A program made the position numbers and the translations under genes. 16,266 nt of DNA from NCBI GenBank assembly GCA_002794465.1, contig MTSL01000220.1, forward strand, positions 13,620 to 29,885. The letters run 5' to 3'. The first letter of the stretch is position 1, and every line of letters starts with the position of its first letter. The DNA comes from Paramicrosporidium saccamoebae KSL3. Taxonomy: Eukaryota; Fungi; Cryptomycota. Positions 5,241 through 10,910 of this stretch are shown here, piece after piece. Below the pieces are notes generated by a model. The model worked only from the letters and a program-made list of their open reading frames with translations. It did no database searches and was not told the DNA's origin.

Positions 5241-6855
5241 CTAAAAGGTCGATGTACGCTCCACTGACTGCTGCACATCCAACGTGCCGGCCGTTGAGAC
5301 GGGTTCCAGGGAGCGACGCTCCTGTTTCCGGGACGAATTCCGTACTGCAACGGCCTCTACCTTTGCCCACCTTTGGTCCCGGGTGTTTCCATCGACCATA
5401 TCGCAGGTGGAAGAGATGCGTTCATAGAGTCGCGGATTCATGTCCATGAATAGTCGCAGGCCATTGAACACTTGCAACTGCACGCCCCTACTAGTCAGTA
5501 TACGACACAGTACAATTACTTGTTCCAATGTTCTCGGGAATATTTAAGCATAGCCGGCAGGACGATGGGCATGGCATCCTCGGCATTTTCCGAAACGGCT
5601 CCCACAATATATTCGTTGCTCCAATACTGCAGCGCCCGCTCCGCCACCTGGAAATGCGGACTGCTGATACAGCGGGCAATCTGATGCATCAGTGGCGTCA
5701 GAAACTTGACGAAACGACCCTGTGGGGTGACGTCAAGGACTTCTTCAATTTCATTGAGAAACATGATTTCTTTGGTCGTGTTTGTCTTGGGCCAGAGCCG
5801 GAGCAGTCCCAAGATGATAGGTTCAACAAGGGAACAGTCCTTTTCGGCAAACTGTACAACACACAAGGAAAGTTGTGGAAAGTAGATGGGCAGGCATCGG
5901 TTCTTATGCAGCGGAATGAGTGTTTTCAACAAAAAGATTTTGTGTTCGTCCCGTAGCGGCACGGCAAATCCATTTACTACACTCCCCAATATTTCCAGCA
6001 TCTCGGCAATGTTGTGTCGTTCGTCTTCATAGATAAATTCATAGAAAACGTGTCGCATTGCCTTTCGTATGAATGCACGCAGATTGAGAAACTTTCCATA
6101 TACGCGATGGACGGCCGTCTTGACCATATCCCGCTCTCGTGGATCCTCCAGATCAAACAGCGTCAACAGTCGATATACAAACAGTTGATCTACAAACTTT
6201 CGTGCCATATTCACATTGAATGCATGGGACTCAACTAGTCGGATGAAAATTTCATACACAAGATGCGTATGAGGCCAACTCGAGTCGTAGAGCGGTTCGT
6301 CGTCCTCCGGGTCATATTCATCGCCTATTGGGTTTTGACTCGGTGGAATGGCTCTGAACACGTTTTTGGCAAACATTATAATCACTTCCTGGTACTGCTG
6401 CTCGCCCAGTCCTGCTGTATGTTCGGTAATGACCATGAGAATTTCGTTCAGGGCTGCAGTTTTGAGTTCCTTGTTGCGAATGTCAAAGAGCGGCATGTCA
6501 AAGTCAAATATAAACTCGCACTGCGCAATCTTCTTGGAGAACAGTTTGGGCCATTGTGACTCGGATACATCTACAAGAGGCAGTTAGCAGGAAATGCAGC
6601 CATACCGACAAATTTGGGAAGGGGCTCCATTTCGACAATTTGTCGAGTCAGAAGCAGAGTATGCAGCATCTTCCTTGGTGTTCGTGCGCCTGGCGGCAGC
6701 GCATCCATCTGGTCTGCCCTCAACTTTGCTACATTAGTCTCTGGCTTGGGGGAGGGTGTCTACATGTGTTAGGCGCACAAAAGCTGTACCCGGGCCGGCG
6801 CAGGTGGCGAAGTAGTGGCCTCGGGTTGAGGCGATGCAATTTCGACCTCTGACAT
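5241..6855 (-). CDS. RTS1: PP2A regulatory subunit B'/B56, 4 exons, 505 aa
   Basis: Exons 6855-6790, 6759-6606, 6570-5520 and 5487-5241 (1518 nt). Motifs LFSKKIAQCEFIFDF, EDDEPLYDSSWPH, FDLEDPRERD, HRVYGKF, EILGSVVNGFAVPL, WPKTNTTKE, HFQVAERAL and HWNK..FNGLRLFMDMN. Confidence 0.93.
5488..5519 (-). other. Spliceosomal intron, 32 nt (B56 intron 3, phase 2), tandem TAGTAG acceptor
   Basis: GTAATT...ACTGAC-TAGTAG. Restores HWNK-GVQLQVFNGL. Confidence 0.9.
6571..6605 (-). other. Spliceosomal intron, 35 nt (B56 intron 2, phase 1)
   Basis: GTATGG...GCTAAC-TGCCTCTTGTAG. Restores PLPKFV-D-VSESQWPKLF. Confidence 0.9.
6760..6789 (-). other. Spliceosomal intron, 30 nt (B56 intron 1, phase 0)
   Basis: GTACAG...CCTAAC-ACATGTAG. 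Contains an in-frame TAA. Confidence 0.8.
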
Positions 6856-7727: not shown

Positions 7728-7739
7728 TGTGTGTGTGTG
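7728..7739 (+). repeat. (TG)6 microsatellite followed by G-rich tracts
   Basis: tgtgtgtgtgtg read directly; G runs continue over 7741-7801. Confidence 0.85.
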
Positions 7740-8061
7740 AGGGGAGGGGGTATAAAGTCGAGATGAGGGTGGGGTGTGTAGAGTTGGGATGAGAGTGAGG
7801 GTGCAAATTACAATGCCAAGCAATAATGATACACTGCCGAGGTTATCCGAGACTGCAATGCCGATATCACAGTGCCGGGACCGCAAAAAGTTTGCTGATG
7901 GGTAAACTTGCCTATTAAAGTATATGGCTTCTTTATAGATGGCCATTCTTAACATAGCCGGACTGGACTATGGGACCGCTATCTGGGTCGGATTCACCAA
8001 TAATAAGTGGATGCTGTTTAACAAATTCTATTATAGAGCTCACTATCAAACAGATTCCAAA

Positions 8062-9610
8062 CTAACAGTTGCGAGCTCTTGGATAAATGGCCTTGATGGT
8101 CGGAAATCGAAGCGACTTTAATCCTCCCCTCGTTTTATTGGAGCTCTCTTGGAAATATCGAACAGTAATCTGCGCACCCACCAGCTGGGTTGGGTCTTTT
8201 GCAAAACTGCGGCGCTCCTCCAGGGAAAATCCGCTGCCCACCCAGACATCAACGCCACCAAAATCAATCTTGACACTCGACACCAAATCCTCCACTACAT
8301 GCTGACCGTCTGAAGCAACCAGCATCCGTTCCAATTTGTAATCCTGGACAACAAATTCGGCTTCGAAAAAGTCTTTAACTTTGACAATGTCTTTCCTACG
8401 GGGATTAGTAGAATGATTGGGCATACGTTCGTTTTCCTACAAATGCGCAATCCCGTCGGATAATGAGCCCCTCCCATCCGCGGGCGCGTTGAATATCTAC
8501 AAAATTTCTAAACTCCAAGGGATCATCCGTCCGGTGCTGCTCCAGAACATGCACCTTTTGGATCCCCTCTGCAGCCGACTTTAGCCTGTGCAGACGTTCT
8601 GAGAGAATGGCGTCCTTCATGTTGGTTTCATCGATCAGATCAAATGCAAAAAAGACGAGTCGGCTAGCGTCAGTTTTTGATTTTTCCTCAAATGGTTTTG
8701 AAAGGACAATGGACAGGGCAGCGCTGAAATTGTCGGCCAGCTGATGTACAGTAGTGTCGGGTGTGCCGTCTTCCAGCACACAAAGCTCTCCATCAATATA
8801 AAAATTCGTCATCTCGGTATTGGCCTTGCGAAGGTTCTTTGCAATCTGTAGCAGATTTTCAGAAATGCGGTGGAGATGGCTGAGAATATTGCCTGCGCGT
8901 GTGTATAGTTTAATTGCGGTACCATCGAAATGAGCCAAACACCTGATTCCGTCCAGCTTTCTCGAAATCAACCAATAGTCATCTTTGGTAGCTTCCAGCT
9001 TTATCGAGGGATGTTGTAAAGGATATCCCAACGCCACGGGAAGCTGCTTGCTTGTCACTGGAAAGCTCCTGGTATTTTTTGATTGGGCCACTGTGACATG
9101 TCTCGCCGACACTGCAGTCCCATCCACCTCAACAGTCTCTGAATCGAGAGCCTTTTGCAGCATCCGTTTTCCCATTCCAATGTTTAGATCGCGATCAAAA
9201 ATATCTAATAAAAGTGCACGATGATCTTCATTTGCAGCAATGAAATTCTGGGCCGCCTCAATGGCGCAATGTCCTCTCAGACCATTCTGGAGCTTCTCCA
9301 ACAAACATGAAAGATCCTCTTCGACAATGGGGACAAGGCCTTTGTTACGATGCGTCAGAATAGAATTTCGAGTCACATATATGGGACCCAAACTGTTGAA
9401 GAAACGCAAAAAGTCATGCAGCTCAGTGTATTGTCGTACGATGGCAATTTTCTCTTTGGCCTTGGTGGTCCGACGCACCTCTACGCTCATTAGACACAGC
9501 CTGGAAAGCAGGTCTTGCTTGGTGCTAAAGAAACGCAAGGTTCGTCGGGTGCCAAAGCGATACAGGGCCGAGAATTCTAATTGGGGAATAATTAGAGAAA
9601 CGCGTAGCAT
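8062..9610 (-). CDS. ATP-dependent DNA ligase, phage T4-like architecture (DBD + adenylation + OB), probable mitochondrial presequence, 2 exons, about 505 aa
   Basis: Exons 9610-8427 and 8395-8062. Motif I SRKLDGIRC (Lys codon 8957-8959), III YIDGEL, IIIa FFAFDL, IV GWEGLIIR, V KRTKDIVKVK (spanning the intron), OB-fold VGSGFS and SLRFP. No BRCT or zinc finger. Start is uncertain: 9610 preferred, 9625 and 9490 also in frame. Confidence 0.88.
8396..8426 (-). other. Spliceosomal intron, 31 nt (ligase, phase 2)
   Basis: GTATGC...TACTAAT-CCCCGTAG. Restores FVGKR-T-KDIVKVKDFFEAE. Confidence 0.92.
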
Positions 9611-9623
9611 TGCGGTCCCCGGC

Positions 9624-10910
9624 ATGGACGTGGCCGTGGAGCTGGTCAGAGTTGTTGCTCGTTCATTGTATGAGGACAAGTACACTGTGCTTCTGGACAT
9701 TTTGCTCCGGGACAAAATGTACCGTGCGTGGTGCAGCTGCTCTAATCTCTATAGAATATCGGACGAAGGCGCGGCTGAGAGGATGCAGCTCATGGTCAAG
9801 GACGTTGGAAAGATAGCGGCAAGGCTGAAGGAAGACCGTCTCATTAAGAGTGAGGTGCGGCTAGAGTCGCGCGGCTTGGATGAACGTCCCTTCAACCGGA
9901 CTTTTTATTACATTGACTTGGCTATCTTTGCCGACGTTGTCAAATATCGACTCCATATGATGCGCAAAACACTGGAGGACCGTGTCAAAAATGATGTCAA
10001 TGAAAAGGGCTATCACTGTGTCCGATGTAATCGAACATATTCAGTAATGGATGTCGGAAAGCTGTTCAATCCGACAACCAATGAATTCCATTGCGAAGTT
10101 TGTTCTGCAGAATTGCAGTCGGTTGACCAGTCCATGCTCAGCGCTGACTCGGGACGACAGTCCAAGCTGATTGAGCAGACAAATCATATTTTGCGTCTGC
10201 TACGGCGGATTGACGAGGTGCAAATTCCGCGTTTTGATCCGATAGAATATTTAAAAGCCAGGGACTCTATCGACCTACAAGTCACATCACCCAAGGACTC
10301 GATCAGCGATGTTCTGTCAACGTCGGGGAAGAGTGTTGAGCTGAGGGTAGCGGGGGCTGATGCAAAGGAAAAGGAGCTTCAGGTTGAAATTCTGTCCACT
10401 AGTGTACCCGAGTCAGAAACCAGACACGAGATGCCGGTGTGGCACACTCACAGTACCGTTACGGGACAGCAAGTTAAAGGCTCTGTCGTCTCCATTGCCT
10501 CTCCTGAATCCATCTCCTCCACATTGGCAGCCTCTAAAGAGACCATGGACTATGTGAAATACTATGAAGCAGCGCAAATGAATCCAATGTCTTTACCAAA
10601 GAAATCTCGAACCGAAATGACAGTACCAGAATCCCCCAAACTTGTACAGACGGGTACACTAAAGAGTTCACCAACAGATGCCAAAATAGCTATGACAACA
10701 GATTTGACAACAAATGTGCCAACAGACGTGACAAAAGACGTGACAACAGACGTGACAAAAGATGCGACAACATCCCTCCAGTCACCAATGGTTTCTGTGC
10801 AAGGTGTACTAAAGCCTCTGAGAAACGTGACTGATGATGACAAGAACAACATGACCGAGGAAGAGTATCACAAATACTACGAAGCATATATGGCTCTAGA
10901 CCTAGAATAA
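9624..10910 (+). CDS. TFA1: General transcription factor TFIIE alpha (large) subunit, 2 exons, 416 aa
   Basis: N-terminal winged helix LVRVVARSLY...YYID...DVVKYRL, zinc ribbon YHCVRC...FHCEVC, and C-terminal motif VSVQGVLKPLRNVTDDDKNNMTEEEY. Exons 9624-9718 and 9755-10910. The ORF track's 128-aa upstream extension is antisense to the ligase. Confidence 0.9.
   Translation: MDVAVELVRVVARSLYEDKYTVLLDILLRDKMYRAWCSCSNLYRISDEGAAERMQLMVKDVGKIAARLKEDRLIKSEVRLESRGLDERPFNRTFYYIDLAIFADVVKYRLHMMRKTLEDRVKNDVNEKGYHCVRCNRTYSVMDVGKLFNPTTNEFHCEVCSAELQSVDQSMLSADSGRQSKLIEQTNHILRLLRRIDEVQIPRFDPIEYLKARDSIDLQVTSPKDSISDVLSTSGKSVELRVAGADAKEKELQVEILSTSVPESETRHEMPVWHTHSTVTGQQVKGSVVSIASPESISSTLAASKETMDYVKYYEAAQMNPMSLPKKSRTEMTVPESPKLVQTGTLKSSPTDAKIAMTTDLTTNVPTDVTKDVTTDVTKDATTSLQSPMVSVQGVLKPLRNVTDDDKNNMTEEEYHKYYEAYMALDLE
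9719..9754 (+). other. Spliceosomal intron, 36 nt, in frame and stop-free (TFA1, phase 2)
   Basis: GTACCG...CTCTAAT-CTCTATAG. Removal converts DKMYRAWCSCSNLYRISDEG to DKIISDEG. Confidence 0.78.
10692..10775 (+). repeat. 12-bp coding minisatellite, about 7 units (consensus GTGACAACAGAC) in the TFA1 linker
   Basis: Encodes MTTD LTTN VPTD VTKD VTTD VTKD ATTS. Confidence 0.88.

Follow-up and report, generated by a model that had tools for sequence, protein, structure and literature searches.

A stretch of 16,266 nucleotides (nt) from a contig of Paramicrosporidium saccamoebae KSL3 (Fungi; Cryptomycota; MTSL01000220.1, positions 13,620 to 29,885), hereafter the window, carries on its minus strand a split gene for a predicted ATP-dependent DNA ligase of phage type, which is likely to be targeted to mitochondria. 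The gene begins with an ATG at 9608-9610 and ends with a stop codon at 8062-8064. When left unspliced, the frame opened by this ATG runs down to 8405 and terminates after ...GKRTYAQSFY, and a second reading frame encodes the remainder of the ligase down to the stop. When a 31-nt intron (GTATGCCCAATCATTCTACTAATCCCCGTAG) is spliced out, the two frames become one coding sequence (CDS) of 1518 nt for 505 amino acids (aa) (Table 1). In the alignment, the spliced junction GKRT/KDIVKVKDFFEAEF equals, residue by residue, the corresponding stretch of the intronless orthologues P0001 (KRTRDIIKVKDFFEAEF) and P0002 (KRTKDIIKIKDFFEAEF). The models of relatives P0010-P0012, made by a prokaryotic gene caller, are cut short at exactly the position of the ligase intron, and the contig of P0010 (L015) has there a 37-nt GTAAGC...CAG intron of identical codon position and phase. 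Introns of neighbouring genes that are backed by homology are 32-36 nt long: two lie in PP2A-B56 on the minus strand (32 nt, 5488-5519; 35 nt, 6571-6605) and one in TFIIE-alpha on the plus strand (36 nt, 9719-9754). They have GTA(T/A)G 5' sites as in the ligase, and branch sites CTAAC, CTGAC or CTAAT near the AG. Since the neighbours match it in size, 5' sites and branch sites, the ligase intron is typical of this genome.

Table 1. Features of the ligase gene and of its 505-aa product, in window coordinates (AF2, AlphaFold2; pLDDT, predicted local distance difference test score; a slash in a peptide marks a cut).
Feature	Position	Strand	Residues (aa)	Basis or remark
Ligase CDS exon 1	8427..9610	-	1-394 and first two bases of T395 codon	Translation; P0002 tblastn 9490-8426
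Spliceosomal intron, 31 nt, phase 2	8396..8426	-		GTATGC 5' site, TACTAAT branch site, CCCCGTAG 3' site
Ligase CDS exon 2	8062..8395	-	Last base of T395 codon to 505, and stop	P0002 aa 363-474 tblastn 8400-8068
N-terminal extension (MLRVSLIIPQLEFSALYRFGTRRTLRFFST), putative presequence	9521..9610	-	1-30	R-3 MPP/Icp55-type site RFF/ST; AF2-disordered
Helical DNA-binding domain, T4/Pmar-Lig type	9146..9520	-	31-155	AF2, eight helices; hhalign to T4 gp30; Foldseek
Linker with conserved insert ARH...FPVTSKQLPVALGYPLQ	9032..9145	-	156-193	Alignment, AF2
Nucleotidyltransferase (adenylation) domain	8374..9031	-	194-402	Split by intron; Pfam PF01068
Motif I KLDGIR (K218)	8942-8959	-		Motif mapping
Motif III FYIDGELC	8780-8803	-		Motif mapping
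Motif IIIa LVFFAFDLI	8633-8659	-		Motif mapping
Motif IV WEGLIIRR	8453-8476	-		Motif mapping
Motif V IVKVKD	8371-8388	-		Motif mapping
Motif VI SLRFPTIKAIY	8083-8115	-		Motif mapping
OB-fold domain, OB_2 type	8083..8367	-	405-499	Pfam PF14743, PBCV-1 alignment, AF2 beta barrel
AF2 model, N-terminus			1-29	Disordered
AF2 model, linker			159-186	Disordered, pLDDT < 50
AF2 model, nucleotidyltransferase domain			194-402
AF2 model, OB barrel			405-499
Head-to-head spacer, 13 nt	9611-9623			Followed by TFIIE-alpha start codon 9624-9626, + strand

All six nucleotidyltransferase motifs are found in the spliced product, and K218 is the adenylation lysine. The motif columns K218, D220, G221, R223, D273, G274, E275, E380 and G381 are unchanging across 19 aligned homologues. 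The Pfam model DNA_ligase_A_M (PF01068) matches aa 205-402 (E = 2.7e-19, 70 bits) and PHROG_114 matches aa 44-498 (E = 7.7e-52), both beyond chance. The match to the Pfam model OB_2 (PF14743; aa 429-497) reaches 27.1 bits, slightly below the cutoff of 28; this domain is recorded in the orthologues P0001, P0003 and P0006, and the OB domain of the window ligase aligns with that of the PBCV-1 ligase. A Pfam scan at E ≤ 1 found neither DNA_ligase_A_N, DNA_ligase_A_C (PF04679), BRCT nor a zinc finger. Mean pLDDT of the AF2 model is 80.6. Thus, the complete set of motifs, the host-typical 31-nt intron, and the lack of BRCT and zinc finger, all of which the initial annotation had read from the letters, are borne out. 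The linker insert has the consensus ARH...FPxTSKxLPVALGxPLQ. It is kept in P0001-P0012, which form the window's own clade, and it was not found in the aligned phage or Mucorales homologues. This insert may be a partner-docking motif, and its clade-specific part FPxTSKxLPVALG could serve as a docking site for a partner in the mitochondrial replisome.

Structural comparison points to the class of compact phage-type ligases. In a Foldseek search against the PDB, the top matches were Pmar-Lig of Prochlorococcus marinus (6RAR/6RAS, 4e-21) and T4 DNA ligase (6DT1, 4e-20), both over the full length, and LIG1, LIG3 and LIG4 followed at ~1e-13 to 1e-15, weaker by 6-7 orders of magnitude. Among predicted viral structures, the closest matches are phage ligases. 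Alignment of the family profile with T4 gp30 by hhalign gave a probability of 99.5 (E = 1.4e-22) over 394 columns, covering the DNA-binding, nucleotidyltransferase and OB domains, with residues 40-155 of the query placed on residues 5-131 of T4 gp30. This alignment reproduces the likenesses to T4 ligase that the initial annotation had pointed out (TTKAKEKIAIV/STKQKQAIL, LRGHCAIEAAQNFI/LTGNAAIEELTGYI and DRDLNIG/MRDLECG). The LIG1-superfamily model TIGR00574 (dnl1) scores 43 bits against its cutoff of 217.8, and all 12 NCBIfam matches, including those to bacterial LigB, LigC, LigD and LigE, are far under the cutoffs of their models. The assignment as an ATP-dependent DNA ligase of the phage-type class, with DNA-binding, nucleotidyltransferase and OB_2 domains and a predicted nick-sealing activity, is therefore supported by sequence and model comparison, as is the placement outside LIG1, LIG3 and LIG4; the earlier statement that the N-terminal domain is T4-like rather than LIG1/3/4-like agrees with hhalign, with Foldseek and with the missing A_N and A_C domains. 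T4 gp30 and Pmar-Lig share with the window protein a compact helical DNA-binding domain followed by nucleotidyltransferase and OB_2 domains. The window protein differs from both by its N-terminal extension, by a 35-aa linker insert, and by being encoded in an intron-bearing nuclear gene of a eukaryote.

The term 'phage T4-type' is right for architecture and superfamily, and T4 itself is a distant cousin. Identity to T4 gp30 in BLASTP is ~21% and extends over the catalytic core only, and with this value and its place in the tree (see below) the window ligase is not in the Tevenvirinae gp30 orthologue group. The part of the initial annotation that concerned architecture therefore stands, and close kinship with T4 does not. 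Membership in PHROG_114 was considered as proof of a T4 type and rejected. This family is broad, with the T4 ligase, Pmar-Lig and the T7 ligase all inside, so that membership is uninformative on this point.

At E ≤ 1e-3, a profile search against 1.84 billion representative proteins returned 20,778 matches, and E ≤ 1e-30 was reached by 1,500; most are 420-450 aa long. A further homology search from the family alignment A1 added no new members. The closest non-eukaryotic relatives are ligases of uncultured large or jumbo phages and of a few giant-virus-like contigs (P0015, P0018, P0022, P0067; IMG/VR L016-L095), with 27-35% identity over aa ~30-505 and an identical domain order. In IMG/VR, at least 566 contigs have homologues with 27-33% identity, which align from residue ~25-50 to the end and adjoin genes for a Dda-like helicase, DNA polymerase, exonuclease and NAMPT. 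P0015 and P0018 are encoded on contigs of ~300 kb that have T4_Y16D, Pyr_excise, GIY-YIG and many small open reading frames (ORFs) on the same strand; these contigs are jumbo phages. P0067 (L013) belongs to a giant-virus-like marine contig with Pox_A22 and DUF5824. The best match among cultured phages is Bacillus phage Tsamsa (25% identity, 98% coverage, 2e-22), and the T4-like Vibrio phage ValKK3 has 24% identity (E = 5e-5). In contrast to the window protein, the ligases of uncultured large phages and giant-virus-like contigs, of 420-450 aa, have neither the N-terminal extension nor the linker insert, and their genes lie inside viral replication modules.

Homologues are also found in eukaryotes. 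The window's own clade, P0001-P0012, has 37-59% identity to the window ligase. Named relatives are from Mucorales (Blakeslea, Phascolomyces, Zychaea, Hesseltinella, Halteromyces, Sporodiniella), Calcarisporiella, Jimgerdemannia and Basidiobolus, and all are annotated as hypothetical; the label 'DNA ligase-mRNA capping enzyme' also occurs. These genes are full length like the window ligase, with ~28-31% identity, and have presequence-like N-termini in which an RFF[ST] end is frequent; they differ in forming a separate sub-clade and in lacking the linker insert of the window clade. P0051 and P0330 have a clearly eukaryotic gene context. P0318 (L012) has a presequence-like N-terminus of 56 aa and an ambiguous gene context. 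A bootstrapped neighbour-joining (NJ) tree gives 100% support to the window clade and likewise to the Mucorales clade, and the fungal sequences group together within the viral radiation. T4 and ValKK3 form a 100% clade, which in 96 of 100 bootstraps does not descend from the most recent common ancestor of the fungal sequences. Judged from the distribution of these homologues, the gene is not confined to the window lineage and is spread over early-diverging fungi. Thus, when the initial annotation spoke of a virus- or phage-derived ligase in this lineage, it was right in that the nearest non-eukaryotic relatives are viral, and too narrow in its range. The ligase family seems to have crossed between viruses and eukaryotes on more than one occasion, or to have been retargeted. 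A review of 2020 in Nucleic Acids Research mentions NT-OB_2 ligases, mostly fungal, of unknown function (PMC7470946). A search of the literature found no paper on this ligase family, its presequence or a mitochondrial role.

The N-terminal extension is the main clue to where the protein may act. The initial annotation had described the first 30 residues as rich in Arg, Leu, Phe and Ser with one acidic residue, and indeed they hold 5 Arg and E12 as the sole acidic residue. The number of residues before helix 1 has a median of 0 in viral members and is 5-90 in eukaryotic members and 30 in the window protein. Pooled over 19 eukaryotic members (481 extension residues), acidic residues make up 2.7% of the extensions and 13.3% of the mature part (binomial p = 6e-16), Ser/Thr 20% and 11.8%, and basic residues 15.4% and 14.3%. 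The motif R-x-[FYLW]-[ST] is the R-3 pattern left by the mitochondrial processing peptidase (MPP) followed by Icp55. It occurs in 9 of the 19 extensions, where shuffling predicts 2.1, and 0 of 2000 shuffles reached 9. These sequences are related and not statistically independent, so that the statistics overstate the independence of the cases. The candidate site in the window protein is R26-F-F/S29-T. RFF[ST] is common to the window protein and those of Blakeslea, Phascolomyces, Zychaea and Basidiobolus, whose extensions are otherwise unalignable. In the alignment, a cut at RFF/ST would leave S29 as the mature N-terminus, essentially at the start of the phage proteins. Because the extension is presequence-like in composition and in its MPP-type R-3 site, and has no counterpart in viral ligases, mitochondrial targeting of the window ligase is likely, in line with the presequence first suspected from the letters.

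That the gene belongs to the host is clear from its surroundings. Trm5, Has1, B56, RPL27e and TFIIE-alpha, checked by Pfam, flank the ligase as housekeeping genes. L002, from a related organism, has the gene order of the window in inverted orientation; genes for an FHA protein, Kre9/KNH, a 312-aa ORF, TFIIE-alpha, the ligase, RPL27e, B56, RPL22e and Has1 are common to both, and the two ligases share 53% protein identity, a divergence at which synonymous sites are saturated. The divergent pair of ligase and TFIIE-alpha genes is present in four loci: the window, L002 (~7880-7930), L015 (~2880-2920) and the more distant L014 (~5830-6003). The gap between the two start codons is 13 nt in the window and ~36-42 nt in L002 and L015. 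GC content of the ligase gene (0.47) and that of its third codon positions (0.49) are inside the range of the neighbouring genes. Residence in the nuclear genome, as initially annotated, is supported by the intron, the conserved synteny and the host-like composition, and neither contamination nor a recent insertion of viral DNA can account for the gene. Has1 of the window has ~77% identity to those of the nearest named species (chytrids, Basidiobolus, Coemansia), and this homology places the host among early-diverging fungi.

Other eukaryotes leave the sealing of mitochondrial DNA (mtDNA) to cellular ligases of their own, and these differ between groups: yeast uses an isoform of Cdc9, vertebrates use LIG3, plants LIG1 and kinetoplastids LIG k. 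To our knowledge, the ligase sealing mtDNA has never been examined in most fungi. The yeast Cdc9 isoform, LIG3-alpha, plant LIG1 and LIG k-alpha/k-beta parallel the window ligase in the job proposed here and in an N-terminal route of targeting. Cdc9, LIG1 and LIG3 have a large A_N DNA-binding domain and an A_C OB domain, and the window ligase differs from them in having neither. LIG k is a dedicated enzyme that is highly divergent from LIG1, LIG3 and LIG4 (review, PMC10719067); the window ligase would resemble it in this respect.

Several other proteins of mitochondrial replication and transcription, namely POLRMT, Twinkle and Pol gamma, are derived from phages. In kinetoplastids, mitochondrial PolI proteins are also of phage origin (Harada et al., 2021, PMC7883662). 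The pattern in all of them is parallel to the one considered here, in which a phage enzyme was captured by the nucleus, provided with a presequence and used in the organelle. The window enzyme differs from POLRMT, Twinkle and Pol gamma in being a ligase and in a distribution that so far covers fungi only. Large phages or giant viruses look the likelier donors, and T7-like phages the less likely ones, because the T7 ligase lacks the DNA-binding domain.

Taken together, we think it probable that the window holds a functional nuclear gene for an ATP-dependent DNA ligase of large-phage ancestry, which is imported into mitochondria and seals nicks in mtDNA. What is observed is the structure of the gene, its family membership and genomic residency, catalytic motifs that are all intact, and an extension together with its composition. 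It is inferred that the protein is imported, where it is cleaved, that it serves mtDNA, and when and in which direction the gene was transferred. The gene would have entered an ancestor of the zygomycete-grade fungi and would afterwards have gained spliceosomal introns and a presequence of ~30 residues. The precursor would be imported into the mitochondrial matrix and cleaved by MPP, possibly then by Icp55, at RF/F/ST, and the cleaved ligase would start almost exactly where the phage proteins start. The mature enzyme would seal mtDNA nicks during replication and repair by the three-step chemistry of self-adenylation, transfer of adenosine monophosphate to the 5' phosphate, and nick closure. 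If this is true, the theme of mitochondrial DNA transactions run by captured phage enzymes would be extended; the gene would offer a dated case in which a viral gene passed into a eukaryote and later gained introns and a targeting signal, and a compact, eukaryote-adapted ligase of the T4 class suited to biochemistry would have been identified. A wider and more tentative proposal is that the ancestral mtDNA ligase of fungi, or at least of zygomycete-grade fungi, might have been a captured large-phage or giant-virus enzyme, passed down vertically over hundreds of millions of years, linked to TFIIE-alpha in some lineages and replaced by the Cdc9 isoform in Dikarya. In that case, the ligase would be a fourth component of viral origin in the opisthokont mtDNA machinery, beside POLRMT, Twinkle and Pol gamma.

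Several observations weigh against a mitochondrial ligase acquired in this way. Extensions are very short in P0001 (9 aa) and P0330 (5 aa, MARQG), and the unplaced relative P0245 has a 75-aa N-terminus that is rich in Lys, Asp and Glu and resembles a nuclear localization signal (NLS). The mRNA and the protein may also begin elsewhere than modelled: the ligase ATG is only 13 nt from the divergent ATG of TFIIE-alpha, and an extra in-frame ATG 15 nt upstream would give MPGTAMLRV.... The genome's own Cdc9/LIG1 may already serve mitochondria, a point that concerns genes beyond the one window analysed. Lastly, exact monophyly of the broad eukaryotic set is supported at 35% in the NJ tree, which is a crude one. 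Because this support is moderate, more than one transfer, or a transfer from eukaryote to virus, may have taken place.

The short extensions of P0001 and P0330 and the NLS-like, basic and acidic N-terminus of P0245 would also fit a functional phage-derived ligase of the nucleus or cytosol, with a task such as accessory repair or end joining and with an extension that is no import signal; fungal NT-OB_2 ligases without an assigned role are on record as well (PMC7470946). We consider such a location unlikely, given that the extension is missing from the viral homologues, is poor in acidic residues and rich in Arg and Ser/Thr, and has an MPP-type RFF/ST common to distant fungi. Moreover, neither an NLS-like cluster, a PCNA-binding box nor BRCT was found in the window ligase. 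Dual targeting to mitochondria and nucleus by alternative starts at M1 and M41 has its precedents in yeast Cdc9 and plant LIG1, and the in-frame M41 (at 9490) corresponds to the Met at which the gene caller started P0002. However, M41 lies within helix 1 of the DNA-binding domain (31-46), which is conserved down to phages, so that a product started there would be truncated, and the ORF in L002 also reaches an upstream ATG. Dual targeting by these starts has, in our estimate, little chance of being correct. M41 as the sole true start was rejected because the conserved helix 1 begins upstream of it.

It is very improbable that the enzyme joins RNA or RNA-DNA hybrids rather than DNA. The Pfam model RNA_ligase (PF09414) does match with 37 bits, above its cutoff of 27, but DNA_ligase_A_M scores higher with 70 bits. 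The DNA-binding domain of T4 Dnl type, OB_2 and motif VI are features of DNA ligases, and all structural neighbours are DNA ligases. Practically no weight can be given to the idea that the gene is a contaminant, was inserted recently by a virus, or belongs to a decaying endogenous viral element that has no function in the host. The nearest non-fungal relatives are indeed viral, but the gene has a host-type intron at a conserved position, a host-like composition and synteny with housekeeping genes in four loci. Its catalytic motifs are unchanging across orthologues of 40-60% identity, and no other viral genes were found in the window. A phage-derived ligase that is resident in the nuclear genome and imported into mitochondria is thus the reading we prefer.

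Some minor observations concern the genome and the surroundings of the gene. Introns in this genome seem to be very short (~30-45 nt) and to have their branch site near the 3' AG. For the TFIIE-alpha intron, a 31-nt version with a GTGCGT 5' site was rejected because it breaks the reading frame, whereas the 36-nt version preserves it. With start codons so close together, the mRNAs of ligase and TFIIE-alpha must overlap at their 5' ends, or nearly lack 5' untranslated regions, or use promoters within each other's coding regions. On L001, the contig of P0001, three tandem repeats of ~45 nt (AACCAGACCAAC...GATCTGGGCT) at 1-150 lie immediately upstream of the ligase start. The deposited models P0275 and P0332 of Jimgerdemannia flammicorona join the ligase to an 'EH domain-containing protein' of 1743-2063 aa; they are probably merged gene models and not a true fusion. 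The RPL27e and ligase genes converge, and the gap between their 3' ends contains, at approximately 7730-7810 of the window, a GT- and G-rich stretch of low complexity (gtgtgtgtgtgaggggaggggg...gggtggggtgtg). At 790-1386 on the minus strand, a 198-aa ORF has weak matches to RNase III and to the mitochondrial ribosomal protein mL44, both under the cutoffs. It begins with an Arg-rich N-terminus (MRFFRVQRRSLYV...) and includes a candidate in-frame intron of 39 nt at 971-1009; this ORF may encode a second mitochondrial protein in the window.

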